Of a stretch of DNA of 64,000 nt, positions 1,950 through 56,520 are shown piece by piece. The notes under the pieces were generated by a model, which was not told the origin of the DNA, ran no database searches, and worked only from the letters and a program-made list of their open reading frames with translations. Source of the stretch: Dimorphilus gyrociliatus (lineage: Eukaryota > Animalia > Annelida). The stretch's first letter is position 1; the number at the start of each line of letters is the position of its first letter. Position numbers and translations under genes: made by a program. Where the stretch lies: assembly GCA_904063045.1 (NCBI GenBank), contig CAJFCJ010000026.1, positions 412,964 to 476,963 on the forward strand. The letters are read 5' to 3'.

Positions 1950-4849
1950 ACTAATGAGTGACGAATGTTGTAAACTTTCACCTATTTATACAATTGAGCA
2001 CTGCAAAAAATTTTTTCCCATTTCTATAAATTACCAGTTTCCACTGAAATTGAGTAAATGTCAAAAAATTTTTAAAAATGTTTCCAATTTCACGGAGATG
2101 TCCATTAAAAAAATTTTTTTAATATTTTCATAATTAATTGTATAAGTTAATAACCATACCTTTTAAAAAGAATACAGTATTTTTCTGTGGGGGACAGGAA
2201 CCACTCTTCTCAATAAGAAAAGGACTTTTCAAATTTTTATAATTTTATTCTACAGTCACCTTTAATCCCAAACCACCAACCATACTAATTTGCCTACAGA
2301 TGTTTATCTTGTTTTTATAAATTATAATTGGAATAGGAACCATTCTAAAAAATATCTTCATTATCTTTTCTTTTTGAAGGAAACCAATTGTTAACATTTT
2401 CAAATCTGTTGTTTTTTGTTTGGATTGAGACAGCAACCACACTAATAATATTAAGTGTAGCTATTAGTATGAAAACTTTTTTTTGTCTTTGGAAAGACAA
2501 TATAATTGTTAATTTATAAAAGAACAAGAACCAGTCTTTAGGTATAGTCTTCTTTAAAATAGATTACATTCATAGGGTACTTTTCAAATGTATGGTTGTT
2601 TATAGACTTTTTGTAAGAGGGCATATAGAGAACCACTCTACTACGATAATAGGGAATTCTAGATAACAAAGATATTTGAAATTAATTTGAAATAAAATTT
2701 GCTTATCAAGTTGAAAAACCATGGATATTTTTTAAAATGAGTTGTTTTTGTGACGGCTGGAACCATACTATATGACTTTTTAAATGTTGAGTTTGTTATT
2801 TAGGAAAAATACAAGTTTTTTCAAATAGAACAGGGCACCACACTAAATCCAAATTTTGGTTAAACAATCTTTTTTTTAAATAGAAACTATAACAGACATT
2901 TTTAAATAGGTTGTTTGTCTGCTTTTTGTGGGGATAGAAACCATATTAGGATGTATATATATACAATAATATACTATAATAGAATATTTCTCCGGGAAAC
3001 CATACTAAATAATATTTTCGAGTATATCTTCCTTGAAAGATGCAAAAGCTTATCCGGATACTTTTTTAGAATTATAATTCAATTTGGGACGGGTAACCAC
3101 ACTATAACATATTGTAAGATTTTTTGACTTCAAAAGAGAAAGAAAACCATTTTTAAAAGCAGTCTTTAAAATAAAAGGAACAGAAACCACACTAAGAGAA
3201 ATTTTTAATGAATAATAGAGGAATTAATTTTCCCATTCATATGCATTGTAAAGTTTACTATAGTCTGGTTTCAGTGCTAATCGTTCTGCCAACATTATGA
3301 TATGAATAAGTGCCAGTCTATTTGTATTAGAAAATTTTAGAATAGAAAGTTAAAAATACAAAGAAAAAGGTCAAGGTTATTTCAGACAGGTTTCTTTTAA
3401 TGACATTTTTTATTGACCATGAACTTTGTTAGGCCTAAAATTCACCTACTTAACTCTTCCTATTCTAGCAATGTTTGTATGTTTATGAATTTATAGGAGT
3501 AGGAACCAGTCTTAAAAAATTTTGAATTATATGTAGGGGAACCACACTGAAAACTTTTCCTAAGTGTTAACCTAAACAATGTCCTCACTTTGTAAAATAA
3601 AAAGTACATTATTCATGCAATTGTATTTTAATGGTAAATGGACACAAACCAGCCTTTTAACATGGTTCTTTCTAGAAGATACTAGAAACGGAATCAACGC
3701 CATCTTTCAGAATTGGAACCATTAAAAATATTTATGTACTTAAAAAGTTATTAGACCAAAGACATTTTAGCATGGAGCAGGAACCATACCAAAAATATGT
3801 AATTTTTTATTACTTGTGTTGGTTAAGAAGATGATTGTAGTATGGTTCCGTATTCATCTTTCTAAAACAATTCCACACTATTTATTGCAACTGATCAAAT
3901 TATCATCATCATTATTCAACAATTATTATGATTTGATGGAACAAGAAACCATATCTTTTTTAAAAATTTAATTATCAATAGTTCATTTTTAGCCTATTTA
4001 GAAGCTAGAAATTTTAAACATTTTGGTAATTTGTTCAATGATTGCCCTTTTTGGTGTTTTTCAACAACCAAATGATGAATTCCTTCATTGATGACCACCA
4101 TTTTTTTGAATAGCCAAAGATATAATTATAATAAGATAATTTCCTTTTTTTAAGGGCTTCTCTGTTGGGAACAGTAACCATACTAAATACTTTGAAAGGC
4201 ATGTTGTATAGAAAGTAAAAAAATCTCTAAAATGTATTAGGATTTGTGGTTTGAAAAGGAAATACAAAATTCAAGTATTTAACTGTTAGCTTACACCTTC
4301 AATTCAGTTATTTGGTGGTGTTCAATCAGCAACCATACTAGGAAACAAAATCCTTTATTATCTAAATTAATTTATTTTGTAATGGACAGGAACCCGACTA
4401 AATACTTTTGAAATTTGTGATTGGTGATTTTTGTATGAAAACCACACTTTGACCAAAAAAAATCATTAAAAATTTTTAAACTACGCTTTTTTCTGTTAGG
4501 AAACAGGAACCATACTATAAAAAAATAAAATTTAAAACCTGTTGTTTATTGGATAAGAACCACACTAAAATATTATTTCAATGTGTTGTTTTTTTATTTT
4601 TACAAAAGAAGATATATTTTGAAATGTGTTTTTTCATACTTGAAAGGAACCATACTAAATTGATTTGCTTAAAAGGTTAAGGTTATTCTTGATAAGAACC
4701 ATACTAGAATACACAAAAAACGTTTTGTTAAGCAAAATGTGTTTTTATTTTCCATGGGACAGAAACCAGTCTGAAGAGTCTTTAAATTTTTTCTTTTGTA
4801 TCTTTGTCAACTTTCTTTTACAGACAATAACTTTTTAAAGATTTCAAAG

Positions 4850-5090
4850 GTCAGAACATGAAAATTGGTCTCTAAGTGCAATTCACAGAGTCCCTTCATA
4901 GTCATTCATCCATTTTCTGGGTATTTTATCATTAACAATAAATCTTCAGCAATTACTCTTCCAGATGACTTGATGATTTGACATAAAAAGCATATAGCCA
5001 ATAGTTGGTCCATATATCTTTAGCTTTTTGACTTCTACCAAAATATTCTTATCATTTTCAGTTTCACTTTCAAACATCCAATATGGCTGC
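4850..5090 (-). pseudogene. Possible FLYWCH/MULE transposase remnant
   Basis: Minus strand reads GRSQKAKDI...YAFYVK, like the GSQRGKDIL..GFAFNIK FLYWCH start of the other copies; frameshifted. Confidence 0.35.
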
Positions 5091-5886
5091 CAATACAAAA
5101 AGAAACCATACTAGAATGTATTTTAATTTAAGTGATGCTTTGGAAGGTGAACCACACTTTTCATTATAAAAGTTTTTTAGTTTTTTAGTATACTGTTTCC
5201 TTTTTAATGTTTTGTTATTAATGGAACACGAACCACTCTAGCTAACTTAATGAATGTGTTTTTTTTTTATGCAAACTGAAAAGTAATCTATTTTTGGGGC
5301 GGAATAAGAACCGTATTAATTTTTTCCTTCTTTAACCTTCACCTTCAGAAAATTAACCTTTTTATCATTTGGGAGATATTAGCAAATGTTGTAGATAAAC
5401 CGGAAGTAACAGCTGTTATATTGATGAATAAATATATAAATAGATACCTTCTGTTTATTATTTGTTTCGAAAAAATTTTGTATTATCGCTCATTACAAGT
5501 ACTAATATCTTTTTTATCGTGAATTGTGAATAAACGTTTCCTTATGACAAATTAAACAGTGGCATCTAGTTTTTATCTCCATCTTCCGTCCCCAAGTCCA
5601 CTTCATATCCTCCCTATTTTTTAAGCATTACTTTAATAACACATGAATAAACATGACCTAATTATCCTCATGAATAAACATTTAGAAAAAAAAATCTTTA
5701 TATAGCAATGATTTCACACGCGAATCTTTCACTTTGTCCTTGACAGCGTTACTATCAACATCACGTGTGTTTTTCTTAAGTAAGTAAATTATTTATTTTT
5801 TACTTTTAATACTATTGTTATTATTGGCGGCCATATTTGACAGTAACTTATTATCTAATTTTTTTTTTTTTACTGTTTTCAAAGCA

Positions 5887-6245
5887 ATGACGCCGCCAAC
5901 ATCCGTTAAAAAATTAAAGCATAAAAAAACAAAAATCTGCTCTGTTTGCCATCGCAAAAGTAAGTATTTTTTTTTTGTGCATAAATTATAATAAATTTGA
6001 ATATATTTGTTTTTTTTTTTTCTTCAACAGAGTTATTCAGAGCTAGATGTTATAGTTGTATTGAATTGTCAAATAAATTCTGTTTAGTAACATTAAAGGA
6101 TATCATTCAAGATGATCCTTTGGTTAAATCAGCTCTAAATTGTAAATATAGTAAAAAAACTTGTTATTCAAGTATTATTATATGTAAAATAATTTTCATC
6201 TCTATTATCGCTCTTGTTTTTATTTATCTACTCTTTTATTATTAA
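5887..6245 (+). CDS. Putative small spliced zinc-finger protein (CxxC-x10-CxxC), ~95 aa
   Basis: ATG 5887; exon 1 5887-5959; GTAAG..CAG intron 5960-6030 (71 nt) joins in frame to the 5997-6245 ORF: MTPPTSVKKLKHKKTKICSVCHRKKLFRARCYSCIELSNKFCLVTLKDI...; AATAAA ~6302. Confidence 0.55.
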
Positions 6246-7088
6246 CTTTTGTATCTTGTATTTGTAATATTCTTTTAAATACAAGTGTAAAAAACTTTAT
6301 AAATAAACAGTTAAAATACAATCAATTACACTACTCTAAAAGTTTAATATCTAGTATCTTTTACTTTTTTCAATACCCGTTTTCACTTTCATTTTTCAAT
6401 TACTTCTTTATTCAAATATTGATTATAAACTTATAGACCAATCAGTAAATAGATAAATCCTTATTTTTCCATGAATTTTTCCTCTTTATAAATAAACATC
6501 ACCTAATTATTTCATTTTCATGAATATTCATTACATATTGTTACTCACATTCCAGTAGGCAAATATTGAATCAGATGAGTGGCAATCAAAGAATAATATC
6601 ACAAATCAACCAAGCTCTAAATCTAGATCTCTTAACAGAAACTATGAATGAAGGCTCATTTGAGATGGAAGCCAAAGGGAGAAAGAACTACTTCCATCTG
6701 TAAATATGGGAAATGTTGCAAGGGTCATATATCTTGGTGATTGAAGAGCTATTATACTCCATGCTAACTAAAGAAAAGAATAGATAATAACACCTATGGA
6801 GTATAAATATAAAAAGTCTGGATTAATAATTCATCAACTAATATCCTTCCAAGCCTATAATTTTGGACAAAGTGATTCTTAATATATTTCACAGAGGTAA
6901 ATTTCTAAATACTTTTAAGCAGATTTTTGAAGAGGAACATTTTAATTTAATATGTTTTCTTTAATAGCAAATTATTTCAATTTTTGTCATAAATAAAATT
7001 TCAGCCATTTTGAATATTTGGAAAGGACATTGATTGATATCTGACAATTATTTTTAATAGTCAAGTGAATTTGTTCTGTTTTTATAAC

Positions 7089-8152
7089 ATGGCTTTGAAA
7101 TGTAATAATTGTGATTCAAAAATTTATGGAAGGCAAAAATATTTGAAATGCTGCCTTTGTGAGAATCTTATCCATAAAAAATGTACAGGTATATAAGTAT
7201 TTAATTATGTTTTAGATAATTATATTTTGTTAACATATTCACACAGAAACACCTAGCCTACCAGTTTGCACAACATGTAACAAAAGAAAATATACTGTTA
7301 GCCTTAAGAAGTTAACTAATCTGGAAATTGACCAATACCAAAAGAATAATAAGAAGAGCTTAAATGATAACAGAAGTGATCCTGATGAATTTAAAGATTC
7401 AACTTTGGAGCATGAAAATGCTGTAAATTCAGATAGCCACTCAATGGAGCTGGAATGTTTGGAAGAAGTTGAGGGAAATGCAAAAGATGATAGTGATTCA
7501 ATGAGAAAGAAGGATTTTGAGATTGTAAAGAGAGTGAGGAGAAAGGGACATGACATTTGTTGTTAAACATGAAAGACTTACAACTACAATTTGGGTGTGC
7601 AGTGTGAGAAATAAGAAGAAAAGATGAGTAAGACAAAATGATTAATGGCAATCTGCAACATAATCAAAAAAGAAGAGATAATTTAGAAGTAGATGTTAAA
7701 GTAAAAACAGATTTCAAAATTATTTCCAAAAGTGATAAGAAAACATTTGGAAGAAGCTTTGCTCAAAAAGTTCTTTTATCATATGAATTTTTGGTTTATC
7801 AATTAGAACCAATAATGACTGTGATGGATGGCATCAAAGAATGAACAGTAAGCTACCTGCCAAAGGATTTTTTACATACTTGTTGATGAGCTAAAGAATG
7901 AGGCTGAATTGATTGCAGTTTATGAGAAAATATTGTCAGAGAAAAGGGTTTATAAGCATCAAAAGAAAAAGTATATTGACATTCAAACACAAATTTTTGA
8001 TTTGTGGGATGATTTCAAATTAAACAAATTGACATCCATTGATTTATTAATGAAGACATCTCATATCTACTCTCCAGCATAAATATCATTTAGTAACCAA
8101 TCTTGTTCTTTAGTATAATATTTAGTACCCAGGTACATTCCCACCCGACCCC
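7089..8152 (+). mobile_element. Internally deleted PHD-FLYWCH-MULE pseudogene with right TIR-like end
   Basis: MALKCNNC..KCCLCENL(fs)YHKKCT, intron 7190-7246, ETPSLPVCTTC..YTVSLKKL, acidic linker, FLYWCH start (FEIVK..RKGHDI), MULE C-terminus (GWHQRMN...IFDLWDDFK..) ending ~8081; cccacccgacccc end at 8152 resembles the GGGGTC.GG TIR of the 45927 element. Confidence 0.8.
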
Positions 8153-8936
8153 AATGATCCTTTTGATTGTACTTTATTATTCATTCTATTGTGCCAGCCT
8201 TCCATACTATTATATAAGTCCTTATTGATAATCCAAATATTGATCAATTCAATGGTTTCCAGCAAGTCTGAAAATTTTCTCTTTTCTTCCAACTGACTCT
8301 TCAAGGTAAAAAATGTAGTAATAATATCTGCAGGTAGAAAAGGTAAAAATTGATCTTCAACTCTATCTCCTTTTGTCATCAAAAGTTTGGTATATGGATG
8401 GAACTTATAAAATTGTAAAACATCCTTCCAAACAGTTATTTTCTTTGCATTCATTATTGAAAAAAAAAGAAGTGAAACAGGTGCCCTTAATGTTTGCATT
8501 TATGACATCAAAGAAGAGGAAAGCTTGGAATTTTCTTATAAAACACATCTAAATACCTTTTTTAATACATTTCTTATGAGTCATTGTCAAAAAGTGCTCA
8601 ATTCTTTATACTTTATTCCAAACATTTTTTAATTGCATTTATAACAAAAGCCCATTATCTATCAACAACAAAAAGTGAATAACTAAACTTTGAGAATTTC
8701 TCTTATAGAAAGTATTTTAAAAAAACTATTCATTTGAAAGCAGCCCAGACAGGAAATCATAAGCAGGAAATAGTTGCTCAACAAAATGGAGGATCTTTCA
8801 TTGCATGATTTTTATAATCACAAAAGTTTAAATTAAATTTTAAATGCTAAAATATTCCATCATTTAAAAATGAAAGCATTGTCATCTGTTTGTCCTGAGT
8901 TTTCAATTAAAGGATGTGCCTATATACCTGTTGGTA
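8153..8936. mobile_element. Scrambled mosaic of sense and antisense MULE fragments
   Basis: Minus 8160-8430 gives ..MEGWHNRMNNKV; plus ~8440-8530 gives LFSLHSLLKKKEVKQVPLMFAFM; plus ~8870-8925 gives KALSSVCPEFSIKGC. Confidence 0.7.
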
Positions 8937-8938
8937 TA

Positions 8939-9620
8939 CAGCCGTGGTCATAAAAATCTATACATGGAAAAAAAAATTTTTTTTTTGGATTTCTTTTGAA
9001 AAACAGTCCCAAAAAAATGGCCAAAAATATTTATATAAATTTAATTATTTAGTTTGTCAAGGTTTTTTTTCTAAATTTTTGTGTTTTGTATCAGTTTAAG
9101 AGTTACTTTTTAATTCTATTTCCTCTATTGACAATAATTTGCCAAACTCTCTCCCCCATTCCTCTATAAAAATTTTTCAAAAAATCTCTATTGTTTGTGT
9201 TGATTTTGTCCTCCTCTTCCTGTATCCTGTCCCATTTATGGTCAAGGGTTTTCGGTGTTTGCATATCATAAACTTTGAGTTTTAAATAACCCCATAAATT
9301 CTCTATGGGGTTAAAGTCTGGAGAGTATGTAGGCCAATCAAGACCCTGAATTAAATTCTCCTCCAGGATATCCATTGTTACTCTGGCAGTGTGTGGTGGT
9401 GCATTATCCTGCTGCCAAATGAAATTTTCTCCAAATTTTTCCCTCAAAATTGGGAAAACTGTTCCCTTCAAAATGGGCAGATACTTTGCTCCATTTCTAT
9501 TTAGAATCCTTCGAATGGTTCTTTCAGAAAGATCCATTCTTAAGAAAAATTTTAGAAAAAAAGTAGAGCTACTAAAATCCAAAAAAGAAATTGTGGAGTC
9601 AATGTCAAATTGGGTATAAT
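8939..9620 (-). mobile_element. Truncated Tc1/mariner (IS630-Tc1) element with one TIR
   Basis: TA at 8937-8938 followed by Tc1-type end cagccgtggtcataaaaat; no partner TIR found. Confidence 0.75.
9103..9582 (-). CDS. Internally deleted Tc1-family DDE transposase ORF (159 aa)
   Basis: LSERTIRRILNRNG (HTH segment) fused to WQQDNAPPHT...DWPTYSPDFNPIENLWGYLK; first catalytic Asp region missing. Confidence 0.85.
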   Translation of the reverse strand: MDFSSSTFFLKFFLRMDLSERTIRRILNRNGAKYLPILKGTVFPILREKFGENFIWQQDNAPPHTARVTMDILEENLIQGLDWPTYSPDFNPIENLWGYLKLKVYDMQTPKTLDHKWDRIQEEEDKINTNNRDFLKNFYRGMGERVWQIIVNRGNRIKK

Positions 9621-11027
9621 TTTAAAAAATGTGCTATACATTTTAAAGGTGGAGCACTTTCAAATTAACAAAATTCTTGTTTTTCTATTGCCAATTTTTA
9701 ATATACTTCCTGTCTAGTAAAGAACCAAAGTTTCAAAATATGGTTCACTGGTCCACCCCAAAACAATAGCATATATTACAAAATTTTAGTGTGGCTCCTG
9801 TTCCAGAAAAATTCATGTTTTATGAAAAATCTATAAAAAATTTTTTCAACATGGTTCCCGTCATACAATCAAAAAATGTGGTTCCAGTCCTTAAAAATAT
9901 ATAGTTAAAAATTGCTTGTTAATAAATATATTTTATGTATTGTACCTTGGTTCCCTGTCCCAAAAAAACATTTATTATTACTGCTAGTATTTTTTTCATC
10001 TTTAAAAAGTATTTAATGTGGTTCCTGTCCACACACAAAAATTATACTTTTTTCTTCATTGTATTTTTTTTACAGAGAGATATGAATGACCAATTTATGT
10101 GTTTGAGTGATAATATGACAAACAAACTTCTTAATGCTGTTCTTTTCAAAAAAGAATTAAAGTGAGATTTTATTTTCTTTAACAAACAAACACAAATTAA
10201 AAGAAAACTTTATAATGAAAAAGGAGAAGAAAGGATTCATCATGTCAAAAAGATCTTCAAGGAATAGAAATGTCTGTATTTCAAGTTCAAAAGTTTAGTG
10301 TTAGCTTTTAGAGAGAGATACAGAAAAGACTGTTGATGTACAATTTTCACTTTTAGCACACTCACTCAATACACTTTATAAAAATACTTATAATTTTAAT
10401 GAATATTCAATACCTTTGTCAGTCTTCATGAATAAACATGAATTGTTTTTCATTCTATTGTCATTGATTAAGTGATAAAACAATGCACTATTATAGTACT
10501 TAGTATAATATATGTAATCAGAGATAATTTCACCTATTATTCATCAATTATAAAATTTGTCCCTATTATCTAATTATCTTTTATAAGGACTTCCGGTTTA
10601 TTATTACTGGTCCAAAGTCCAAGGAAATACAAGCAGAATAGCAACTCTTGCAAAAGAATTTAATTGCTATACTTTATACAACAAAACAACTTCTAGCTAA
10701 TAAACTAGTATGATTGTGTCATAACATTATTGAACAATACTTGAAAAAAAGTTAACATCATCATTCTCCCAATATTAATGTGATTGGAATAGGTACCAGT
10801 CTATATCTTTAAGACACCCTTACACAATTTTAAAATAGAAATTCAAACAGTAAAAAAAAAAGATATTAGTGTTTTTCTGTTGTAATGGAATATGGAACCT
10901 TACTAATATAACCCAATTAAAAACTAATATGAAAATATTTTGATTTGTTTTTAACTACTTAATACCAGGACTATAAAATTGACCTTCACCTTCAATAAAT
11001 GATTTTTTTAAAAATTTTTTAAATTTA

Positions 11028-13786
11028 ATAGATGGCGACAGTGGTCACCAGTTCAAAAACTGGTAAAAGATGTATGATTTGTTTATATAGATGAAATAAT
11101 GGATACTTGGAGAGATAAAGAAAAATAAAAGGAATACAATATTATATTGGTTTGATGACTTACAATTGGATAAGAGAGAAAGGAATGGAATAAACAGTGA
11201 AATAGATTTTTAACTATAATTCCATTCATTGGAAAATTAGACTGGTTTCAAATAGAAATTACATTTCTTCAAATAAAAAAAACAAAAAGATATTGTATCT
11301 TCTTGATAAAATTTTATCATAATGATCATCTTCTTTTCAGAAAGTTTTTCTCTTGTTGAAGATTGTCAAATCAAAATTTTCAAGTAAATTTTGAAAGAAA
11401 ATACAAATCTTAATCATTAATTAAGAAATATGTTGTCCTATTGTCAAAGTCATTCTTAAGTATGAATGATATGAAGAGGATATCCTGGCATTAGCATAGT
11501 CAAGTACATATACTTGCTATATTGAGTACACTTAATGGGTTTCAATATAGTTTTCTCACCTAAAGTACTATTTATATACTCTTTCAAATATAATCAACAA
11601 CCAATCATCCCTTCTTTCTAATATAAACTGGTTCCTTACCTTATCATTAATATTTTCCCCCTATAGACGGCAGCACTTGACGGTTTAGAATAATGTTTGA
11701 AATCATACTTTAAATGGATTATAATGGATAATATAATATTTTTTTTATAGAGTTTGATAGATTTTTGCAGAATGGAACAACACACCATATTAATTGTGTA
11801 ATTTGAGTTAGTGATTGATTGGATGATGAATAATCATTTGTCCCTCAATTATCGCCCTCTATCGGATATAAAATGCGACGAGAAGAAGATGAGAATTCAT
11901 TAGTCGACGATCTCTCGTCGAAGTAACATCAACTTTTCCATCTAATCGGAAAGATTGATCAATTGATTGATTTAATGAAAGAGCCATTACGGGAAACTTA
12001 TTGATAGATGATTACTATCATCTTTTTCTTCTATGAAATTTTATTAATGTGATGATAAAACGTTACTTTTTTTTTATCCAACGACTTCAATTCTGAATCA
12101 CGAAGATAAAAAGAAAATATCCGCTAAATTCTTAATATCTAATGGAATGTTCTTTCAAAAAAAAAAACGTTCGAATGGATATTCACATAGCTCGTCGTTG
12201 CGGCAGAACGTTGAATTAAAAAAAAAATTCAAAGATATTAAGATTCTTATCATTATCTTCATTTTTGGAAAAGATCTGATAAAGAAAAAGTCTTTAACCT
12301 TCTATTCTTTAAGTCCAAATGATGATAATGGAAGTTAATTATCTTGAGGTGGTGACACAATTTTTCATACACCCTACATTTTAATTTTGAACAAATAACA
12401 AACAAACTCGTGAAATGAAGAAATGATGATTTTATGCATTCAACATTTCTCTCTCTCCCTCTCTCTCTTCCCTATCCCTTTATCATTTCTCTCGAAAATT
12501 GTTTATAAATCAATCAATCAATTAATCATTAACTTCAAAACATTCTTAATAGAACGACAGAATTTTAGAAACGTTCCATAGAATCGAACGTTCTTTTTTT
12601 TTTTAAGGAACATTCCATTTTTACATATTCTTCTTCTAAGGGAGAAAGGAATATTGTTAAAACATTTAAGAAAGAGAGAGAGAGAGAGAGAGGATCGATA
12701 TGATATTCATCATTCAGAAAATCCAAACTATAAAGAGGATATTCGATGCTTTTGTTGCATTTCGCACGTTTTCGAATCGAGGGGAAATCATGAATTTGGA
12801 TAGAAAAATAATAAGTCTTTATCTTTTTCTTAAGAAAAGATAAAGAATTTTATCTAATCATCATTTTAATATCAGAGTATTCTTTTTTTTTTTCTAATAG
12901 TTAAAATTCTAACAAATCAAGCGAACCATCGGAAACTTTTCGTTTCTAAGAAGATATTAAATTAATGGAATTTATCAAAAATTTTCAGACTGTCCGGGTC
13001 CAGCGAAAGGATTATCGTCTTTTTCAAAAATAGTTATATTTCGAATTGGTTTGATGACTCCATTAATCAGGATATAGTATGCAAAATTATATTCTTCGGC
13101 GGCTTGTTCCGTTCGAAGAGTGACCATGATATGATAAGGAACGCTCTATTTATTTAACTTGGTTTCTAATCTAGACGGCGACACTATATATTTATCGTTA
13201 GACTGGTTTGTGGGAGGGGGGCTTAATAATTTTATTATTTGAAAATAATACACTTCCCAATTTAAACTGTAGATGGCGATACTGCAGGATAAAGAAGAAG
13301 ATGATATTTCCCCAAATATAAAACAAGCAATTATCTCCGGAGCTAATCTTTATACAATCTTCTTGCAGGGATGCGCTATGTGAATATCCTTTGAACGGAC
13401 AAAAAAAAAAGTGGTTCCAGGAAAGACACAAATTACAGGGAACCACTTTTTTGCAGAATGAGAATGAAAAAAATTGTCATAGAGCGATAATTCGAGATTT
13501 TAATTTTTTGCAAGACCAGGATGATTATCTCTATGAAGAAGATAAATCTTTGAATCATCCAGGAATGATAAGGATTGCAATATTGTGCTTAGAAAAGCCA
13601 GACTTAGACACAAAGGATCATCTGCATCTTTTCATTGATTCTTTACTCCTTATCTCCAGATTATCCTTAATCATCTACTTTTCATATCTATATTTATGAT
13701 GGAATATTATGATATTGTAAACAATAACAAATATTTTTTATCTAGTCACGTGACATATATTTTTTTCTTAAATAGATGGCGACACT
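11028..13786. promoter_or_regulatory. Cluster of six CTCF-like sites in a motif-free island
   Basis: tagatggcgaca 11029, tagacggcagcac 11664, tagagggcgat (minus, 11851-11862), tagacggcgacac 13172, tagatggcgatac 13270, tagatggcgacact 13773; match invertebrate CTCF core TAGRYGGCR. Confidence 0.55.
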
Positions 13787-43699: not shown

Positions 43700-45060
43700 T
43701 ATTAATAGAGATTCCAAATTGTAACATTTTCTGTGACATATCAATGAAGAAATGCATTGTTACACTGCAAAGGCTACCTTCTAGTGAATCTGTTAATGAA
43801 GAAATAAGTCAAACACCAAATTTTGATACAGCAAATAATAGAAATGAGCAAACTATTGTTTGTGAAAATCATTGTGGAAATTCAAGTGGAAATGATACAA
43901 ATGGCAATATTATGGAAACACACAATGTTTTAGTTGAAGATCTTCCAGCTCAACAAAATAATATGATGGAAGTTTCATTTATAGTTTCTCCAAAATCAGA
44001 TTGTGAGAAAGAAAGTTATTCATTTAAAATCTTAAAGGGAATGAGCCAGAAAGGAAAAGATTTGCTACTTTGCAACAATTTCTGCTACAATATTAAAGAA
44101 AAGAGAAACAAGACAACATTCTGGATATGCAGTGTTAGGAACAAAAGAAATAAATGTTCAGCAACAGTTACTCAGCATTGTAGTTCTAGTGAAGTTATTC
44201 CATCTCTAGATAATTGTACAAGACTGGCAAACTGGACAAGAAAGAAGTTTAGACCAGCTGAACCTCAAAGTATTCACTTCAACTTGGCTTTTATTCCTGA
44301 TGATTTTTTACAAATGGATATACAAATGGAGAATGATAGAATACTAATATTTTCAACTACAAAGCAAATTGAATTATTATCTAAAGGCAAAATATGGTTT
44401 ATGGATGGCACATTTAAATGTGTGAAAGACCCTTTTTATCAACTTTTTTCTATTCATGGATTTATAAAAAAAAATGGAGAAATAAAACAAATTCCAATGG
44501 CTTTTGCTTTTAAATTGAATAATCTAATTTGTTAAATTAACAGGCAATACAAGATTTAACAAATGGGCATAGCCCCAAAAAAGTTGTTGTAGACTTTGAA
44601 AAAGCTATTTGGAAAGCACTATCATTCACTTATCCTGAAGCAAACATTAAAGGGTGTGTTTTTCACTGGACACAGAAAGATTCAAGTAATACTTTAATTT
44701 AGCATTTGAGCTCTAGATAGAACTGACATATTTATTTCCAGGAATTAGGATTATGTAAGATGTACAAGGAGAAAAAAGCTGAATATAGAATCATGAAGAA
44801 ATTTATGGCATTACCATTCCTGCCCTCTGATCTGATAGAGCCAACATTTAAGACTATTAAGGAAATAAGTGCTGTTGAAATGAAGTCTCTATTGGAGTAC
44901 ATTGAGACATAATGGATAAATGGATTTTATAAACCAGAGCTATGGTCTGTATATATGGTGAGGCTATAAGGACAAATAATGATCTTGAAGGCTGGCATCA
45001 CAGGCTTAACAAGAAAAATTTGTACACAGCACAGAAAAGCGTATCAGAATATTCAAAGCA
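43700..45060 (+). mobile_element. FLYWCH-MULE transposase pseudogene (best-preserved core)
   Basis: ORF 43744-44535 with FLYWCH (GMSQKGKDLL..FCYNIK..FWICSVR) and MULE DDE start (WFMDGTFKCVKDPFYQLFSIHG); continues VVDFEKAIW..GCVFHWTQ; 56-nt intron 44686-44741 then ELG; TNNDLEGWHHRLN; stops and deletions present. Confidence 0.9.
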
Positions 45061-45926
45061 AAATATTCAGCTTATGGGAACAATCAATATATTAATATTT
45101 AAATATTTGTAATTCTTATTATTCATTTTTTCCTGTACCCTCCACTGAAATATTTCAGGGCGGAACAGGATCCATACTAACCGAAAATTTCTAATTGTTT
45201 TCTCTAAAAAAAAATGTCTAAAATGCTTATAAAAGAATTAGTGTGGTTACCTGTTCATGTTTAAAAAACTGTACAATTTCTAGCTTCGTTAAATTATTTT
45301 GCTAGTCCGGTTATTATCTATTCTGTTGATATTGAAAACAGATAATAATGTGGCTCTTGTCCCTTTTTATACAGTTATTTAGTATTGTTCCCGTCCGCCA
45401 ATTCAAATATTTTTTCTAAACGTATCAAGTGTTCCATACATGATAAAAAGTAGTAGTTTTGGAAAAGAACCCGTCTACATACGAAATACTTTAGGAATTA
45501 AATTATCTGAGTAAATTACTCATGTTTATCAAATATGAAACATGCTAAAAAAAAAAATTCATGTTGAAAATAAATTAGTATGGTTAGTATTCCTCATCTT
45601 TTTCAAAATAACGTATATACTGTTGATTTCTGCAAAGTTATCATAGTATCATGAAACCCAACCAGAACTTCATTAACTTTATTTATATATTTTTCAAACA
45701 AAATATGAAAAAATTTTGTTTATACATTTTTTATTTTCAAGACGGAAACCATACTTTTTGTCTTTAAGACAGTTTCTTATATTTTGTCTAACAAGTTGTT
45801 TTGAAATTTATTTATTTCTCATACCAAAATGTAGTTATTGACAAAATATTACATTCAGTGTGGGACAGGAACCAGATTAGAATAAATTTGAAATGACACA
45901 TTTCTTGGATTTTTGTATTTAACAAA

Positions 45927-47648
45927 GGGGTCAGGACAGTTCGCCCCATTTTAGGGATACTTTATCCCTTTCAAGATTGATTGACCCTTCAGTAGGGAAA
46001 GAGTGATGTTCTACTTATTACATTTTGTTATTTGTTATTTTACTGTTATTTTTATATCTTTGATATTCTCAGCAAAACATACCTCATTAATGTTTCTGTT
46101 ACCAGTTTTTTTTACAAATCTATTTCCTGTTCCTCTGAAGGAAAAGTCTTTTGAATTAAATGAATTTTTATTATTTTGAATGTTACTTTACAGAGATTGG
46201 TTTAACTATTGAATTGATTGGTGTAAAAATGAATTTAAAAACCTGTTGGTGTTGTATGAGGAAATTTTATTGGAATCAGCAAAAAATAAGATGCAAATTA
46301 TGTAAACACTTTTATCACCAAAAGTGCTCAAAAGGTAATTGAATTTATTTTTTTTCATTTATTTCAATGAATTTTTTTTATAAAGCAGATGCTGATTATT
46401 GTGTTGATTGTTTCAATATTACAAAACAACAAGTTGTTATCAGAATAAGAGAAGAGTAGATCAAATGATGGAAGAAAATGGATTTGATAAAAGTAGTCCT
46501 AAACATATGTCTACTGTTAATAAAACCTTTCAGGAAGAAAATCAGGTGATGTATTAAACTTAATCTTTCTTCAATTATTAACATGAAATTCTGCTTACAG
46601 TTAACATTATCATTTGATTTTGAAAATAACTTTGTGGAAAATGAGGAAGGAAGAAGTCATTCATCAGATAATGATCAAGAAAGAAGAATTGATGTACATG
46701 ATGAAATTTCATTCAATAAAAGTCAGGAAGTCAATTCTGATGCTGAAAATGTTGATACTTTTCAAATAATAGAAGGAGGAAGTAGGAAAGGAAAAGATAT
46801 TTTATTACATAAGAACTTCTCATACACAATTAAGAATACTACAAAAACATCTAAAACTTGGAAATGTACTCAGAGATCAAAAACACAAAGCTGTACAGCA
46901 TACATGTTTAACTCTTTTTAATATACCTCTCATACTTTGTATAACACTAGAAACTTGGCTATATAAATGATTATAATGAGAAGAGTCATTATGGAAAAAT
47001 GCTAAGAAAGTTGATGTGTCTACCTTATCTGCCCCAAGAATTCATCACTTCAAAGTTTTATGAAATAAAGATGAAGCTGTTGGAAGAAAATGTGTACAGT
47101 GATCTTTTGGATTATATTGAAAAAACATATATCAATAGCAAAATATGGAAGCAAAAGTATTGGTCTATCTATCAATTGGCAGTGAGGACAAACAACAATG
47201 TTGAGGGATGGCACTCAAGATTGAATAAATCTTTACAAGCAAATGGAAATTTGTATAATTTGGTACAAGAGCTGGCAAGGGAAGCAGAGTTGGTACAAGT
47301 TTATAAGATACTGCTATCTGAGAAAAAGTTGAAGAAAATGCAGAGTAAAAAATATGAATATCTACAGTTTGATATTTTCAGCTACTGGGATAAGTTTGAA
47401 AAGAGGGAAATTAGTCTAGATGATCTTTTGAATCATTTAGTTCAGTTGAATATTGCATAACATTTCATTTTACATTTTACATCATGTACTTGTTTTCTTA
47501 GTTATTTCCATCTTGATAATACAAATAGAATTACTAAATATCATTCATTTATCATTTATATCTCATATCTTATCTTCAAAAGTTATAAAGAAGGGCAAAA
47601 AAGTATGTCAGCTATCCTTTAAAATATGGGGCGAACTGTCCCTGAACC
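45927..47648 (+). mobile_element. Complete non-autonomous MULE (1722 bp) with TIRs and 9-bp TSD
   Basis: Left TIR ggggtcaggacagttcgccccat, right TIR revcomp ggttcagggacagttcgccccat; identical TSD tttaacaaa at 45918-45926 and 47649-47657. Confidence 0.92.
46229..47460 (+). pseudogene. PHD-FLYWCH-MULE transposase with DDE core deleted
   Basis: MNLKTCWCC..CKLCKHFYHQKCSK, intron 46335-46388, DADYCVDC; FLYWCH in ORF 46583-46921; C-terminus in ORF 46999-47460 (LPYLP..RTNNNVEGWHSRLN). Confidence 0.85.
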
Positions 47649-50600
47649 TTTAACAAATGGCTAACGGTCAATGTTAATATATAATATATGCACTATGTGT
47701 ATAAGCGGAACAGGAACCATGCAAACCAAAATTATTATTTTTGTTGAGATTTTTTCCAGCATTTCAAGGTTTTTAGCTAGTATGGTTCGTGTCCAATACT
47801 GGAAAAACTCTTTAAGAAAAAAGATTGTTAACGATATTCTACATTTTGAAAAACACTTTATTAAGTAAAATAGAGTGGCTCTTATCCAACATTAGAAAAG
47901 AAGTAAAATTTAAATTCTAAAAATCATGCATTCAATATTGTAATTCATGAATTTTTTCCACTACAATTAGGCCACCAAAACTTTTTTTTAGTAAAAGTGG
48001 TAGTGTAAGAGAATGGATTAGAAAAAGAAACCCGTCTAGATGATAAAATGCTTGTAAAATACAATGAAATTTCGTGTTACTTTTAGGATTAAACAAAACT
48101 ACAAAATTGTCTTTACAAAGAAAAGGGTACCATACTAATTTATCATTGACAAAGTTTTGCTAATATGGTTTTATTTTTACAAATGTTATTGGAAATGGAA
48201 ACCACACTAGAAAAAAAACGATATATTTTCTTGATTGGAATTGGAACCATACTAACCGCAAATTATTTAAAATTAATCTTTTTGAATAATTTTGATTTTA
48301 ATTTTTCTTACAAACAGCGAAGGGTTTTTAGAAAATCGTTTGTTTTGTATGAAATTAAGACATTTACTCAATTACGAAATGTAGATATCTATCCAATGAC
48401 AGGAACCATACTAAAAGACATTTTACTTTTTAACTTCGGGCTAGGAAAACCACCACACTGGACTAGACCAGTAAATACCATCGCATTTTGGAAAGGGGAA
48501 CCAAACTACAAAAACGTTTTAATACAAGACGTATTTTGTGTCGACTAAAATTTTTTTCATTTTCGACAATGCTTTTTTATGCCAAAAACTTTTTCTCTTA
48601 AATTAACCTTAAGACACCACACTGATTTTCTATAAATACGTCATTGCAAATATTTTTAAAATTTTAGGGGAGGAACCATACTTTTAAAAAAACACTGTCA
48701 AAGAAAAAAATCATATTTTTCAGATAGGACAGGAACCACATTAGAATATTTTTGTAACCTAATATTCTAGTATGGTCCCCGTCGTTGTTTATATATTTTT
48801 AAAGTATGAACCACATTTATATATTTTAGTGTGGTTATCTTTCAAAACTGTACAATTGCAAATTGAAATTATAAAGAATTATAGGAATTTAAAAAAAGGG
48901 TTGTAGTGTGGTTCCCTTTGAAACAAACCTTAGGATAATGAACAAGTGAAGCATCTTTTTTTTCCTTTGGACTATATTTTTAGAGAACCATACTAAAATC
49001 CAGTTTTGTTAAAAATATAAAGATAAATACTTAGAAAACATCCATTTTGGATGCTGGACTTTTGTTGTTTGAATTTTTTCATTCAAAGAAACCCTATTAT
49101 CAAGTGGAATCACACCAAAAATATTTTGTTAAATGGATTACTATACCATACTAAAAAGATAGTTGAACTACTTCATTAAAATATGTTCTAATATGATTAC
49201 CAATAATTAATCATATAACTACTTGTAGTAAATTAATATTAAGATGGTTCTCACCTCAAATTAGAGCTTGTTTCTCTGATGAAAACCTCCCGTGAATTAC
49301 AACATAGAACCACATTAAAAAGAATAAAGAATATGAAAAAATAATGTCAAAGATAATGAGTGTTTTTTTTTTTTAAAAGACGGGAACCACACTACCTGTG
49401 ATGATTCCACTGTGTTGTTTTAATTTTGGGCAGGAACCGCACTAAAAAAGTATTGATAGAAAAAGGTCTTTTTTAAGAAACCTTAGTATGGTTCTCATTC
49501 GAAACAGAAACATATATGTTTGAACCATACGAAGTTATGAATCTTCCGGTTTTTTTAAAAAGTAAAAGAAACCATACTAAAAATTGTTTTGGATAATTCT
49601 CCTAATAGAACAGATTCCATTTTTAATACATTAAATATTTAAAACCTTGGCTAATTCTCCGTATTTACCCGTTTCAGACTGGTTCAATTAAATGCTGCGG
49701 TAACCGCGTTAGGACAAGGAACCTTACTAAAAGGTAATTTTAAAAAATTTAAAAATTAAGTTTTTTTTATAATAACAAACAGGAACCACACTAAAAAAGA
49801 AAGCAATTTAAAATAATTTCTTTTTAAGGTAGCCAGGCTACATTTTTGAATTATCGTAAATTTTTAGTATGGCAACCCTTCCAAATGAATTTTAAAACCT
49901 AAGGTTAGCCTTAACATTTAGAATGTAAGATAGTGTGGTGCACAAAAGATTTTACATTTTAAGCCAGTTAAACAAATTTATTGAAATTTTCAAAAGAATC
50001 GGACAGACTAAAAAAATAATTGTAGTATGGTTACTATTCCAAAAAACATTGATGTTATCTTTTAATAGTAAGGTGTATTACAAAATTACTTTTTGTACTA
50101 TTATTGTCAGGTTGTCATTCCAAAACAAAGCATTCACTGAGTTTTTTAAGAATAGGAACCATACTAGAAAAGCTGTATTCTGAAAAAATTACTTTCTAAA
50201 AAATTTCCTCAATTCTTTAGTGTTTCTCTTGTTTTTTTAAAGGATTAGAACCACACTAAAAAGTTAAGGGGGAGAACATGAACCACTGTCAAAAAGTCCT
50301 TTTTTTGGGCAGGACGGAAACCACACTAAAGTTTTTTTTTTAATTTTAGAAAGAGGAACCAGGAAACCTGTCTAAACGGGCGCCCAATGATTACTTTTAG
50401 AGATGTATAGAACTTTGATTTTTTTTAGTGTGGTTTCTTTTAATGTAACAGTTTTATATATGACGAATTTGATTTAAACTGGTTCTCTTTAAAAACCATA
50501 GTATGGTAAAATATTATTTAGTTTTATTCAGTGGGACGGGAGCCACACTAAAATTAAAAATAAGTATACTATTGTTCAAAAGTAAAAAATGAATTGGAAC

Positions 50601-51899
50601 CACATTAAAAAACACATGTAATGATTCACTATTTAGCAAGTGTTTGAGACATTGTTGGAGACAAAAACATCCATACATCCTTAATTAATTAGTTTGTCAT
50701 TAAATTTTCTTTGAAGAAGTACTTGTAATTCCATTCTATTCCAGTGGAGTATGCATTATCCTTCCCTGAATGTTGGAAAAACTATAAATTCAGAGTAAAT
50801 TTCTAAAGTAATGTTAGAGAGAAGAAAATTTGACCATTTAAGGATATACACAGTGATAGCATAGGTCAACCCTTAGTTTGTCACATATCATCTGTCTTTT
50901 TTTCAATATTGCTTGCTTTCTGATTTGTGATAATTTCTAGGAAACTAAAAGTTATTGACACAAAATAACATGTTTGTATGGATATTTAATAATTTCGACT
51001 GGTTCTTATCGTGATAAATATATTAAAATATTTTACGTATTAAGGAAACCACACTAAAGTATGGTTCTCACTACAATGAAACATTTAAGAGTATGGTTTT
51101 CTTTTTTAAAGATAACACTGGAACAAAATAAAAATTTTTTAACAAACACGATTATTAAATATGTATTCGTTAAAAACAGGAAGCCATACTTTTCACTAAA
51201 GCATATGTTACACTAAAAGACAACTGTAAGGTATAGTTTGGAATTCTCAATAGGAACCACTCAAAAATATTTCAACAGATTATTTTTAGTTCAAATTTTT
51301 ATAAACAGGTATCTTATTCCACAAGAAAGTGTTTTACTTCAGGGAATTCCAATAGAATGGGTTTCCTGTCTTAGAAAACATTTCATTGTAGTCTGGTTCT
51401 TATTCGGAATTATTTAGATTGTCTTTATCTCATTTAGTTACTTTTTTTCTGAGCATTGTTGAAAGACATTCTTTAATGTATGTTTATGATATTTAACAAC
51501 ATTAAATAAAACAACATGTTTTTCTAAGCTTAAAGCTAGTTTGACAAGCTAGTTTTGAGAGACAGGTACCATATTAAAATGTTTGAAAAACATTTTCATG
51601 AAGTGTCTTATTGGCCAGGAACCACACTACAATATGTGCGGCTTGTGTTTGAAAGAAATACAAACTATCTGTACCGTTTGTAAGGGGTTCCAGATTAAAA
51701 CGAAATGAAATGTTTTAAGCAAAATGTGTACGACGGGGACCTGTCTATAAAAATATTTTCTATTCATTTCAAAAGTAAGGAAAAAAAAAAGATAATTTAT
51801 TCATAAATTTAAATAATGTATTCACATATCAAAGTTAAGGAAATTGAATTGTCTTAACCATAAAATAGTCTCAAACCTTAGATCTTTTTCACCATCTTT

Positions 51900-52110
51900 A
51901 TTCCTTGTCAAAAAAATGAGTGATTTTTCTTCAGAATATCAATTATTCAATTTAAAAAGTTATCATCAGTAAATTGGTGAAAAAAGATTGACAGCCATTG
52001 CATTTGGCATAGACATAATCCTGACAGTCACTGCATTTCATCTTTCCCTGTCTGCCATATCTTTTTAATACAGTTAATACAAACAGGTGCCAAGACTACA
52101 TTTCTGCAAA
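51900..52110 (-). pseudogene. Frameshifted PHD-finger-like remnant
   Basis: Minus strand PVCINCIKKIWQTG(fs)KMKCSDCQDYVYAKCNG. Confidence 0.45.
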
Positions 52111-55100
52111 AAATAATTTACCAGGAAAGAAAGTTTGTTTGAAAATTGTATAATCTGGTAATATTCAATTCACCAATTCAATAGAAAGAGTATCAATGCT
52201 TAAAAATACAAATGACCCAGAAAAGAGTCTTTTTTTTTAATATGTACAATAAATTTAGACAATTTCTCTTTTAATAGAATTACATTTCATTGTGTTGTAT
52301 GTAAAAGAAAATACAATACTCCACAGGGGAACCAGTCTAAAATATACTCAATCTATGTGTAATATGTGTTGAAATAGTTTTAAGACTGTAATTTTCCCTG
52401 AAACTATTGGAAGCACTCTAAATTCTATTATTACATAAAATATACAAATATGGACTTCAGTTTTGTTGTTTTGAGGAGAATAGGAGACCACACTAGACTT
52501 TTTCTTTAACCTATTTTAGAGTGGCTGTGAAATGTAGTATAGAGCCAGTCTACTTCCGTTCTAATTTTAAACTTTTCCATTGTATTTTTTAATTAAAAAA
52601 TAACTTTTTTAAAAATAATTTTCTAAAGTATATCAATACCAGTTTTCATCCGACGTACTCTTTTAAACGGTAACCATACTAATATATACTGTATATTAAG
52701 GGTTTTTTTTCTGAACCAGACTGAAGACTTTACAATTCTTTTTATAAATTTAATTATTTCTTTAAAAAGAAAATCAAACTTTTAAATATAATATTCCAGT
52801 CAAGTCTGAATATCTGTAGCGAAACTATTTTCCCTAGTTCATTTAAAAGGAAAGGGGCAAGAACCACACTAAAATACAAAATAAATTTTTGAAAGAGGGG
52901 ACAGAAACCATACTACACAGTACCTATGAAAATTTGCAATCTGTTTGGAATAGGTACCATCTTAAAAATATTTTTTGGAATAGTGTAATATTTTTTAAAA
53001 GATTCATATTATTCTTAAAGAAATATGGAATACTTTTAAAGTGAACCACACTATTATGAAAAAGTATTACAGTTAACAAAATCCACATGTATTTTTATAT
53101 TAAAAATAGAATATGTTTTTACATTAGTATGGTCCCCGTTTCTAAAAAAGTGTAACAAAAAATGGTTTTCCATTGATAAGCACTCTAGAAAACGCTTTAG
53201 TGTATATAAAAAATAAACCATTGTAATGTGGTTCCCGTCCGAAAGAAAAATACATTATAGAATAGGAAGGCCAGTGTTTTTTAAAAAGTCCTTTTTGATG
53301 ATATTTCCTCTAGTGTGGTTTCTATTCAACAAACAAAGAAAATTTTCTTTAAATGTGGTTCCCGCCATATATTTGAACTTTATTATTCTGAAACCACAAA
53401 AAAAACTTAGGATAGTAACCACATTAAATCTCTCAATTCAAAATGAACATTAGTGAGGTTCATGTCCAAGACAAATTAAAAAAGTATGGTTATTATTTTT
53501 TTGCTTTATATCAGAAAATAACAAAAACTTAGTGTGGTTCTGGTCCCGAGGAAAAGAAAAGTACATTTAAAAATTATTCTAGTATATTTTTCAAGCTGGA
53601 AAAGGTTAATATAAAATCTTTACCATAATAGTTCGCATCGTCTTAGTGTGGTTTCCCATCACATTTGTATTTTATATAGAATATAGAAATTAATTAACAC
53701 AGATTGTTCTCTATTTTTTTTTTTAAAGAAAAACTCTAAAATAATGTTATTAATCTTTAATAAGTTACTCTTTTTTATGTTGTTTACCAGGAGAACCATA
53801 CTAACAATATTAACATTTTTAAGGTTTTTAGTATGGTTCCTTTTTTTAAAAAAAACTGTGTTTTATAGTGGTTCCTTACCAAAAAAAAATTTTTTGTGTG
53901 ATTATGATTCTCTTTATGGAACAGGAACAGGAATCATACTACAAAATTCTTTATAAAATTTTAGACAAAATTTTCTTCCTGGGAACAAGAACCACATTAG
54001 AGTTGTGTTTTTGTTGTTTCTGTTCTACACTAAGATATATTTTTGACAGTGTTGGCTCTTTTTTAAGAGATGCATCATAATGAATACAAATGAGTAATGT
54101 AAAACTTTAAAGAAAAACCAGACTAACATACTATTTTTTCAAATACCTCTTTTTATTTAGAAAGTATTTTTGCTTGATGTGGCCATTATACTAGGAATGG
54201 AAGAAAGGCAGCATTCAGCATTAGCAGTTTGCTAGAGAACCACACTAATGAAAATTTTAAATATTTAGAATTTTATTTTGGATGTGTGTTTTCTTCTACA
54301 TTTTAAAAGGCATTCTTTTTGGGGGGACTAGAACCACACTATGTTATTATGAAAAATACTAGTATTCATCTTTATATGTACTTTTAAAAGCACATTACAA
54401 AACATTAAAAATTGTTTGGTTTGTTTTAATTTTTTCATGAGAAACCACATTAGCAAACAATTTTGATTTTATTGTTTTTATGTTGTTTTTGTATGAATAA
54501 TAACATTTATAATAAACATTTGGAACCATACATATGTATTTTTGAACTATATCTTAAATCATATTTTAAAATGTGCTTTCTTTAAATTTAATGTCTGGAT
54601 CCACATGAGAATGTTTTAAATAAAAAGACATATTGAAACACAATTTTTTTAATACATGTATTTGTGGAGAGGAAGGGAAGAGGAACCATATTAGAAAACT
54701 TTTCTTTTTTGAATTATGGCTAGGTGATAAATTAATTGTTTGGTAAGGGAGCCACACTAAAACACTTTTTTATGTAGTGTTCTAAAAAAATTTAAGGAAC
54801 CACACTTTTTAATGTGTCTTTTTTGAAGGGGAACAGGAACCACACTGACTCAATTCATTATAAAAGAGCTAGGCATTCACCAATTTCATCAGTTGCATTT
54901 AGCTCTCAAGTCAAGAGTTAAATGAACTATCAGACAAAATCAAGAAAGTTCTTGATTATTGTCTGATAAATATTTATAGTTTACTATAAATCTAGCAGAT
55001 GATATGAATGTGGCCAAAATATCAATAAAAGAGAAAGTCTTTGACTCTTTGATTATAGTCTGACAAACTATCAATTTTTGACAAACCACACTTTTTAAGA

Positions 55101-56202
55101 AAAAGTGTTGGGTACATGAAAATAAATTTTAACTTATTAATAGAATTTTTCTTCCATCCAAATGTCTTAATAAGTAATAAATAACCAAGCTTATTTATTA
55201 TATATTTTGTTACTAGACGTCACCACTAGCTCTGTCAAGGTCAAAAAAAACATGGTTTTTACTTTATATATATATTAATATATTTAACACAACTAATAAT
55301 GTTGAATTATAGTAGTGTTTTACTAAAGTGGAGGTTATCTTTAATTTCATTTAGAGCAACTGACAAACTCTATAAATAAGAGTTTATCAATAGTGTTTGG
55401 TAATGTAGCTACCAAATTCAAAGTTATTTTTACTTGTTTAATAAACAATAATTAAATGTAGCTATATTTAAAAGAGTTCAAAGATTGTCATTGAGAAAAA
55501 TCTTTATTCTCATTTGTGTTTCATGTAACCTACACATTGTTGGTGACCTTTACAAGTTGTAAAGGTTATCTACTCTCTCTCTCTCTCTCTCTGCTCTCAA
55601 TATAGTGTAGGCTACTAAAATTCTGTGACATTGTTAGCAGATTTTTCAAATGTTTAAAGAGTCTAGTGACTCTAAAGATTATATACTTGTTTAAAGTGTG
55701 GTTCCCCGCTCTTTTAAGATTTTTATATTAGTTTTTATGGATTACTCTAAATAGGATAATCTAACCTGGTAGGAGAAAAGTTTTTTAATGGTTCTTCTAT
55801 ATTTTTTTGGATTTCTCAATCTCTTGAAAGATTACATCTTTTAAATTTAACTAAGTCTGTCTACTAATTTGGATTATAATCAATTTGTAGATTTAATTAA
55901 ACTGGTTCTCGCTAATTCTCTACTTTACAGATTGTTTTTCAAAGCCTTAACAGCTGTTGTTTTTCTTAAAAATTCATTACATCTTTGAACATAAATTACT
56001 TAGTTGGTAATGCATTTCTTGTTCAAATTGGCTAGTTATCAATGTGCTTTTTGATTAAACCTTGAAAGAAGTTTGAGATTGTCTTCACCAATTTGGGATG
56101 AGATTTTGGGTTGGGAAAAGTATTTAAGCAATTGGTTTGTAATTAGATTAGTCCAAACTAGGGCTTAGGAACAATAAAACCCGGAATAAAGGATCCAGAG
56201 CT

Positions 56203-56230
56203 GGGTTAGGGTTAGGGTTAAGGTTAGGGT
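56203..56230 (+). repeat. Short interstitial telomere-like tract (TTAGGG)x4, one variant unit
   Basis: gggttagggttagggttaaggttagggt. Confidence 0.8.
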
Positions 56231-56520
56231 CAGAGTTTTCAACAACATACCATAAACATTATACCAGTTTTTAAATGTCAACATATTCATCAAATGCTAA
56301 TATTATAGATTATGTAACATACTGAATCAGTTTGTTCAACATTGAAACATGAATATAGGGAAAAACACATGTCCTTTGCTAGTTATGCGGACAGGTAACC
56401 ACATTAATTTTTTCATGTGAATTTTTTTTAATTTTTGTTTCTCCATTATTCACCCCAAAAAACAGGAAATTTTAAACTTTTTAAGTTTAATTGACAAAAA
56501 TGTATATATTAAAAATCGCA

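Follow-up and report, generated by a model that had tools for sequence, protein, structure and literature searches.

Architecture of the motif field

We analyzed a window of 64 kb from the genome of the annelid Dimorphilus gyrociliatus (contig CAJFCJ010000026.1, positions 412,964 to 476,963 of the forward strand), which contains a field of several hundred copies of one short, oriented DNA motif and in which no host gene was seen. G+C content was 24-32% throughout and the window contained no N. The top G+C-containing k-mers were all fragments of GGAACCA[CT]ACTA or of its reverse complement, and RRAACCANNYTA matched exactly 165 times, always left of 55.9 kb, as compared with 3.4 ± 1.9 matches in dinucleotide-preserving shuffles. 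A 24-column weight matrix, obtained by iterative relaxation of the seed AACCANN[CT]T, gave 333 matches at ≥9 bits and 279 at ≥13 bits (12.4 and 1.6, respectively, in Markov shuffles used as control). The consensus was an oriented module of about 20 bp, GGrACAGGAACCA-YA-CTAaaa, which reads by position G-G-r-A-C-A-G-G-A-A-C-C-A-[Y/G]-[A/T]-[C/T]-T-A-a-a-a. An earlier note, made from the letters of this DNA, had estimated by eye several hundred copies of GG-N3/4-GGAACCA-NN-YTA with a variable 2-nt centre, and the matrix agreed with both the number and the form. The sequence architecture is real and statistically overwhelming, and it is apparently undescribed.

Weight-matrix matches spanned positions 90 to 56,397, and the last 7.6 kb of the window held only two, which is the chance rate. 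The right limit of about 56.4 kb given in the earlier note was thus confirmed by the last match, whereas its start at 2150 was placed too far to the right: six copies lay at 70-414, indicating that the field continues to the left beyond the window. The earlier note described a 54-kb stretch saturated with the motif, but about half of the field (27 kb) consisted of motif-free interruptions, much of them transposon remnants, in which motif density was at chance level. When matches not more than 450 bp apart were merged into blocks, the motif-bearing DNA amounted to 29.5 kb, with 11.2 copies per kb or one copy per 89 bp. In AT content, the field did not differ from its motif-free flank. The field and its main blocks were as follows (strand is given where one prevails).

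1-56,420: whole motif field, 331 of 333 matches left of 56.5 kb; runs past the left edge of the window, right edge near 56.4 kb
70-414, minus: motif-bearing block, 6 copies, mainly minus
2179-5329, plus: motif-bearing block, 33 copies (30 plus, 3 minus)
9725-16,000: patchy motif blocks among interruptions, 27 copies
16,694-19,913: motif-bearing block, 34 copies; includes segments that have duplicates at 19.1-19.7 and 21.2-21.6 kb
21,182-26,324: the largest of the motif-bearing blocks, with 58 copies (22 plus, 36 minus)
32,743-38,071: blocks dominated by the AACCA-GT/GG-CTA core variant, 37 copies including those at 34.8-38.1 kb
40,460-43,487, plus: motif-bearing block, 33 copies (28 plus, 5 minus)
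47,695-54,858: two motif-bearing blocks, 77 copies together; the C centre variant dominates 52-56 kb

Distances between neighbouring copies were broadly distributed (median 80 bp, quartiles 54 and 125 bp). Copies on the same strand had a minimum spacing of about 30-40 bp; they were rarely closer than 38-40 bp and piled up at 40-50 bp, and around 15% of same-strand neighbours lay 38-50 bp apart, the next module beginning where the previous one ended. There were 191 copies on the plus strand and 142 on the minus strand. Neighbours shared their strand more often than by permutation (231 pairs vs. 169 ± 9), in runs that reached about 30 copies, and the strand switched between around 30% of neighbours. 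No preferred distance between opposite-strand neighbours was found, and motif spacing displayed no significant period of about 10 bp that would correspond to helical phasing.

Anatomy of the module

Conservation differed along the module, whose columns are numbered here so that AACCA begins at position 0.

-8 to -1: G G r A C A G G, conservation 25-68%
0 to 4: A A C C A, 91-99% conserved
5 and 6: variable centre, mostly TA, CA or GT; the two columns covary (mutual information 0.27 bit)
7: C, more rarely T
8: T, 93%
9: A, 84%
10 to 14: A-rich

Towards the 5' end information content tapered off gradually, and the core was followed by an A-rich run. Around the core, a T-tract was enriched at -20 to -14 and A/T tracts at +10 to +20, with a weak T excess at +17 to +20. 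These flanking tracts were optional, with TTTT present in 39 and 29% of modules vs. a background of around 20%. Outside -20 to +20, and as far as -60 and +90, every column had background composition. Covariation was confined to adjacent columns and no long-range covariation was detected, which argues against a stem in RNA or DNA and led us to reject a hairpin reading of the motif; a search of the whole window with Rfam at gathering thresholds, together with a transfer RNA (tRNA) search, gave no match. The RUNX site AACCACA, Drosophila Motif 1, the tRNA B box, the insect proximal sequence element A (PSEA) and the reverse-complemented Ruby core each have only five to seven bases, or only one core variant, in common with the module; we take these resemblances as leads, not as tests.

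Spacers, local duplication and retention of the motif

Tandem Repeats Finder reported no satellite or array matching the motif in the window. In all-against-all local alignments of the 60 bp up- or downstream of each module, scored against the 99th percentile of shuffled sequences, about 88% of the spacers remained at the shuffled level of similarity and about 10-13% had a paralogue within the window. The latter stemmed from a handful of multi-unit duplicates, 78-91% identical, among them these.

17.3-18.3 kb: local duplicates, with 19.1-19.7 and 21.2-21.6 kb
40.5-40.8 kb: local duplicates, with 41.3-41.7 kb

Direct repeats flanking the modules (target-site duplications) and flanking inverted repeats were both at control level, and the motif copies had no internal sequence in common beyond the module. 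A tandem satellite was ruled out by the missing monomer array, the broad spacing and the unique spacers; a transposon, a miniature inverted-repeat transposable element or a foldback subterminal array was ruled out by the absence of inverted repeats, target-site duplications and shared internal sequence. The earlier note had reached the same position for satellites and dispersed transposons, although the foldback analogy that it also offered fails on the missing inverted repeats and on the free distance between opposite-strand copies. Its unique spacers were found for the large majority, with the exception of the paralogous minority and of the multi-unit segments that were locally duplicated, and the binding-site-like conservation that it described was evident in a core conserved at 84-99% between flanks at background.

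Core variants clustered regionally: 11 of the 16 copies at 32-36 kb had G at the centre, 22 of the 34 at 16-20 kb had T, and 19 of the 31 at 52-56 kb had C. Taken together, the strand runs, the surviving duplicates and these regional variants point to growth of the field by local duplication. In the alignable duplicates, 33 of 34 motif matches were kept in the partner, whereas simulated neutral change left 29.5 ± 1.9 of the 34 at 6% divergence and 23.6 ± 2.6 at 12%. Substitutions affected 7.0% of core columns vs. 12.3% of spacer columns, and gap columns numbered 3 in the core and 80 in the spacers. These duplicate-based retention tests are supportive, not decisive, evidence for selection on the motif; the field-wide contrast in conservation between core and spacers is the stronger argument. 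Selection appears to act on the motif and not on the spacers.

Interruptions and transposon remnants

Translated searches within the window (tblastn) located MULE-coding remnants at about ten places, and Pfam recognized a FLYWCH domain at 43.7-44.5 and 46.6-46.9 kb. The features found in the interruptions are given below.

5330-9724: motif-free interruption with a multi-copy repeat, MULE-coding and mariner remnants
7.8-8.5 kb, both strands: MULE-coding remnants
9103-9582, minus: mariner-type DDE_3 remnant (Pfam)
16.0-16.2, 18.7-18.8, 20.0-20.7 and 26.5-26.7 kb: MULE-coding remnants
30.95-31.07, 34.1-34.4, 43.7-45.0 and 46.6-47.5 kb: MULE-coding remnants
38,550-39,671, minus: intact 373-aa open reading frame (ORF) with a long poly-proline tract, in a motif-free interruption
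43,744-45,013, plus: FLYWCH-MULE transposase remnant (Pfam FLYWCH; relatives of the ORF bear a MULE transposase domain)
45,917-47,658, plus: deleted FLYWCH-MULE; its terminal inverted repeats, of 36 nt, are 75% complementary

The deleted MULE at 45,917-47,658 occupied a single spacer, so that the flanking motif copies (45,870 and 47,715) would be around 100 bp apart without it; therefore, the field predates that insertion. Its inverted repeat had just GGACAG in common with the motif. The 373-aa ORF gave no Pfam match (E ≤ 0.01) and no homologue in a word-indexed protein search, several other gaps of the field gave no Pfam match, and none of the ORFs of the window was present in a collection of 15 billion proteins. 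Word depth of the 2150-8000 stretch in three DNA runs was that of single-copy sequence over part of the field and multi-copy at 6.6-8 kb; in run X1 the repeat at 6.6-8.1 kb reached roughly 8-30 times the single-copy level. Parts of this repeat (6600-8100) recurred at 20.0-21.0 and 26.4-26.9 kb, and it was partly a MULE-coding remnant.

Transposons make up just 4.87% of the D. gyrociliatus genome (PMC7854359, supplementary table 4), and the MULE with FLYWCH finger and the mariner found here agree with the repertoire described for the species (PMC7854359). With at least nine MULE-coding remnants and one mariner in 56 kb and no host gene, the locus is dense in transposon fragments and poor in genes, a feature of the graveyard type of cluster for PIWI-interacting RNAs (piRNAs) known from Drosophila.

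Proposed function of the field and alternative explanations

The asymmetric core of 18-20 bp, the optional tracts, the lack of RNA structure and a minimum spacing equal to the module's own length argue together for an array of protein sites; the same-strand minimum of around 40 bp corresponds to the module plus its tracts, as expected of sites that do not overlap. Since the setting is free of genes and traps transposons, a domain-level role in transposon control is favoured. The explanation we prefer, with a probability of about 0.35, takes the field for an array of selected binding sites, all for a single sequence-specific protein, that would mark a gene-free, transposon-trapping island as a source of small RNAs or as a heterochromatin domain. 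Under this proposal, several hundred selected modules, each consisting of the GGrACAGGAACCA-NN-CTA core, often with a T-tract at -20 to -14 and A/T tracts at +10 to +20, would bind one DNA-binding protein, and the DNA between them would be unconstrained; an asymmetric site of around 20 bp suggests a protein of the multi-zinc-finger type. Local duplications would expand the array, after which the spacers would drift beyond recognition while the motif is kept. Hundreds of protein copies loaded on about 30 kb may then create a special chromatin compartment which, being without host genes, would gather MULE and mariner insertions. We infer from this arrangement that the protein could license the island as a piRNA-type source of small RNAs or as a nucleation domain for heterochromatin, the licensing acting on the whole domain and not through one promoter per RNA.

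The following points weigh against this explanation. The MULE fragments lay on both strands (about six plus and four minus), without the one-strand bias of a flamenco-like locus; a piRNA cluster of the dual-strand type would still be possible with this mixed orientation. The duplicate-based tests comprised about 17 independent pairs and were biased by motif ascertainment. Finally, Dimorphilus is without small-RNA reads according to MirGeneDB 3.0 (PMC11701709). Data from adults, obtained by the assay for transposase-accessible chromatin (ATAC-seq) and by cap analysis of gene expression (CAGE-seq), were produced in the genome paper (PMC7854359).

Among the alternatives, the modules could instead be mini-genes convergent with the nematode 21U-RNA loci, each acting as a compact promoter, made up of an activator site and a TA-rich CTAAAATA tail, for its own short downstream transcript; the field would then be a cluster of genes on both strands, several hundred in number, each for a single RNA. 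Hundreds of oriented copies on both strands, one per 89 bp and each followed by unique DNA, are what such genes would look like; the T and A tracts beside the core resemble the setting of the nematode upstream motif, whose AT-rich surroundings were reportedly described by Ruby et al. in 2006, and the weak T excess at +17 to +20 points the same way. This explanation is nevertheless unlikely: between +15 and +90 the frequency of T had its maximum at 54% (+18), all other positions being close to a background of around 38%, whereas the 5' T of 21U loci is near-invariant and lies about 40 nt downstream of the motif, the roughly 15% of same-strand neighbours at 38-50 bp leave no room for a unique RNA, and T4 runs in just 29-39% of modules provide no obligatory terminator. 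The defining 21U feature, a T that is almost invariant and keeps a fixed distance, is therefore absent, initiation at a variable distance lying outside the reach of this test, and the nematode-type arrangement in the earlier note, in which every small RNA has a motif upstream of it, fails on this one feature that sequence can show. The same scarcity of T4 runs ruled out an RNA polymerase III mini-gene with a T-run terminator. A role in chromosome mechanics, with the protein-binding array serving as centromere core or as meiotic pairing or attachment site and not in transposon defence, is comparably doubtful. One short motif packed densely into a gene-free, AT-rich, transposon-containing region is in keeping with it, as is a telomere-type repeat at the field edge; however, centromeres would need one field per chromosome, the field is no richer in AT than its motif-free flank, and the contig extends beyond the window by at least 260 kb on its right side and 80 kb on its left, so that the field does not lie at an assembled chromosome end.

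Tiny mobile or templated insertions, either retroelement 3' ends with a short A tail or non-autonomous elements, might also have accumulated in a permissive region without any host function. The gradual loss of information on the 5' side and the A-rich run after the core recall 5'-truncated retrocopies, and the region plainly tolerates insertions. We consider this improbable, given that target-site duplications were not above chance, no longer copies had a common sequence upstream of the core, the window held no source element with such a 3' end, and the regional variant clusters and multi-unit duplicates, which retain their motif copies, indicate duplication in place. It is quite improbable that the signal acts in RNA, the motif being a processing or protein-binding site in long precursors and the strand runs separate transcripts: the runs of like orientation, the longest with about 30 copies, and the alternation of conserved repeats with unique spacers would suit it, but spacing varied from 30 to over 150 bp, around 30% of neighbours lay on opposite strands, and there was neither covariation nor a stem nor an Rfam match. 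An ancient satellite decaying neutrally, without constraint, would account for the signs of growth by local duplication; such decay would affect motif and spacers alike and is insufficient to explain a core kept at 84-99% while most spacers (around 88%) have no detectable similarity, and motif copies were also kept in the duplicates, which makes this origin very improbable.

The interpretation in the earlier note, a specialized chromatin or small-RNA domain, was therefore supported in part: a sharply bounded, gene-free and transposon-trapping field with the pattern of a recognition site was found, and its 21U-type and foldback readings were not upheld.

Comparison with known systems

The nematode 21U-RNA loci with their Ruby motif resemble the Dimorphilus field in having hundreds of copies of one short oriented motif on both strands, clustered on a kilobase to megabase scale in AT-rich sequence, with unique intervening DNA and growth that leaves no satellite structure. 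The annelid field differs in its motif sequence, in the lack of a fixed-offset T, in a several-fold higher density and in modules that abut at 40 bp. It is also gene-free and filled with transposon remnants, whereas nematode 21U loci lie among genes.

With the pairing centres of Caenorhabditis elegans (HIM-8/ZIM), the field has in common a short asymmetric motif that recurs hundreds of times in one chromosomal region and would be best explained by recruitment of a zinc-finger protein. Here, motif density, measured across the window, fell from 11.2 per kb to the chance level. One copy per 89 bp and unique spacers distinguish the field from the C. elegans motifs, which are sparser and often lie within short repeat families.

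Drosophila piRNA loci, both flamenco and the dual-strand clusters of Rhino and Kipferl, are likewise gene-poor islands that gather transposon fragments, and Kipferl is a sequence-specific zinc-finger protein able to license such loci. Transposon orientation in the Dimorphilus window was mixed, and to our knowledge no comparably dense array of one long motif exists at Drosophila piRNA loci. Boxed satellites, such as those with the CENP-B box or the 19-bp box of the Meloidogyne holocentromere repeats, also present a short conserved box in divergent DNA within a structural chromosomal domain; their boxes lie in recognizable tandem monomers, in contrast with the field, which has no monomer.

One-motif arrays with unconstrained spacers are rare, and the cases that are understood serve important machinery, namely the piRNA genes of nematodes, pairing centres in meiosis and the entry sites of dosage compensation; we know of none described in annelids or other spiralians. 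The D. gyrociliatus genome is among the smallest and most transposon-poor of free-living animals, and the field, which lies within one of its few islands rich in transposons, may show how a small genome confines or polices transposons, or how chromosomes are recognized. Bolder proposals are that it represents an annelid system that resembles that of nematodes but evolved independently, with hundreds of individually promoted small-RNA genes under a new 20-bp motif, one per 90 bp or so, in a transposon-trapping locus, or else the first sequence-defined, chromosome-specific recruitment platform described in Spiralia, of the pairing-centre or centromere type; we regard this pair as unlikely.

Literature, searches beyond the window and minor observations

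The D. gyrociliatus genome paper and its supplements (PMC7854359) contained nothing on the motif, piRNAs or centromeres. In the literature searched, motif strings occurred only as unrelated primers and no paper on the motif or on such a field was found, in line with the earlier note, which had not recognized the motif from any described system; an annelid methylome paper treated piRNAs in general terms only.

The right edge of the field (56,199-56,232, plus) bore an interstitial repeat of telomere type, degenerate and with about five units of (TTAGGG), and a further telomere-type 12-mer with one mismatch appeared 4 kb on, at 60,229-60,240 (four matches vs. 0.2 expected). The (TTAGGG)n tract would fit either a chromosome end of the past or an element associated with telomeres. 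An AT-rich tandem repeat occupied positions 40,081-40,321 within a gap of the field, with about seven copies of a 32-bp unit and a 96-bp higher order. Two stretches were promoter-like, with CCAAT boxes plus TATATAAG and no gene behind, one just beyond the right edge of the field (57,100-57,180, plus) and the other within the motif-free gap at 394-2199 (1380-1450, minus). Their mutual similarity was limited to short stretches, and they may represent promoters of transposons.

When metagenomes were scanned for pairs of motif copies at a distance of 55-85 bp, 120 loci were returned, among which no comparable motif field was found; they corresponded to chance matches, coding-type tandem repeats of 12 bp, one array of CRISPR-like form (L035) and a small minisatellite (L086 and L087). 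The array in L035 (positions 1-1109), from a fermentation metagenome, had a 36-bp repeat containing AAGAACCATATTA and unique spacers of about 30 bp, and was unrelated to the Dimorphilus field. The minisatellite of L086 (480-950) and L087 was AT-rich, with seven units 55-99 bp apart, each presenting GGAACCAYACTA and then GGTTGTTTTGTGTG; its spacers are repeated, unlike those of the Dimorphilus field, and the resemblance is probably a coincidence.

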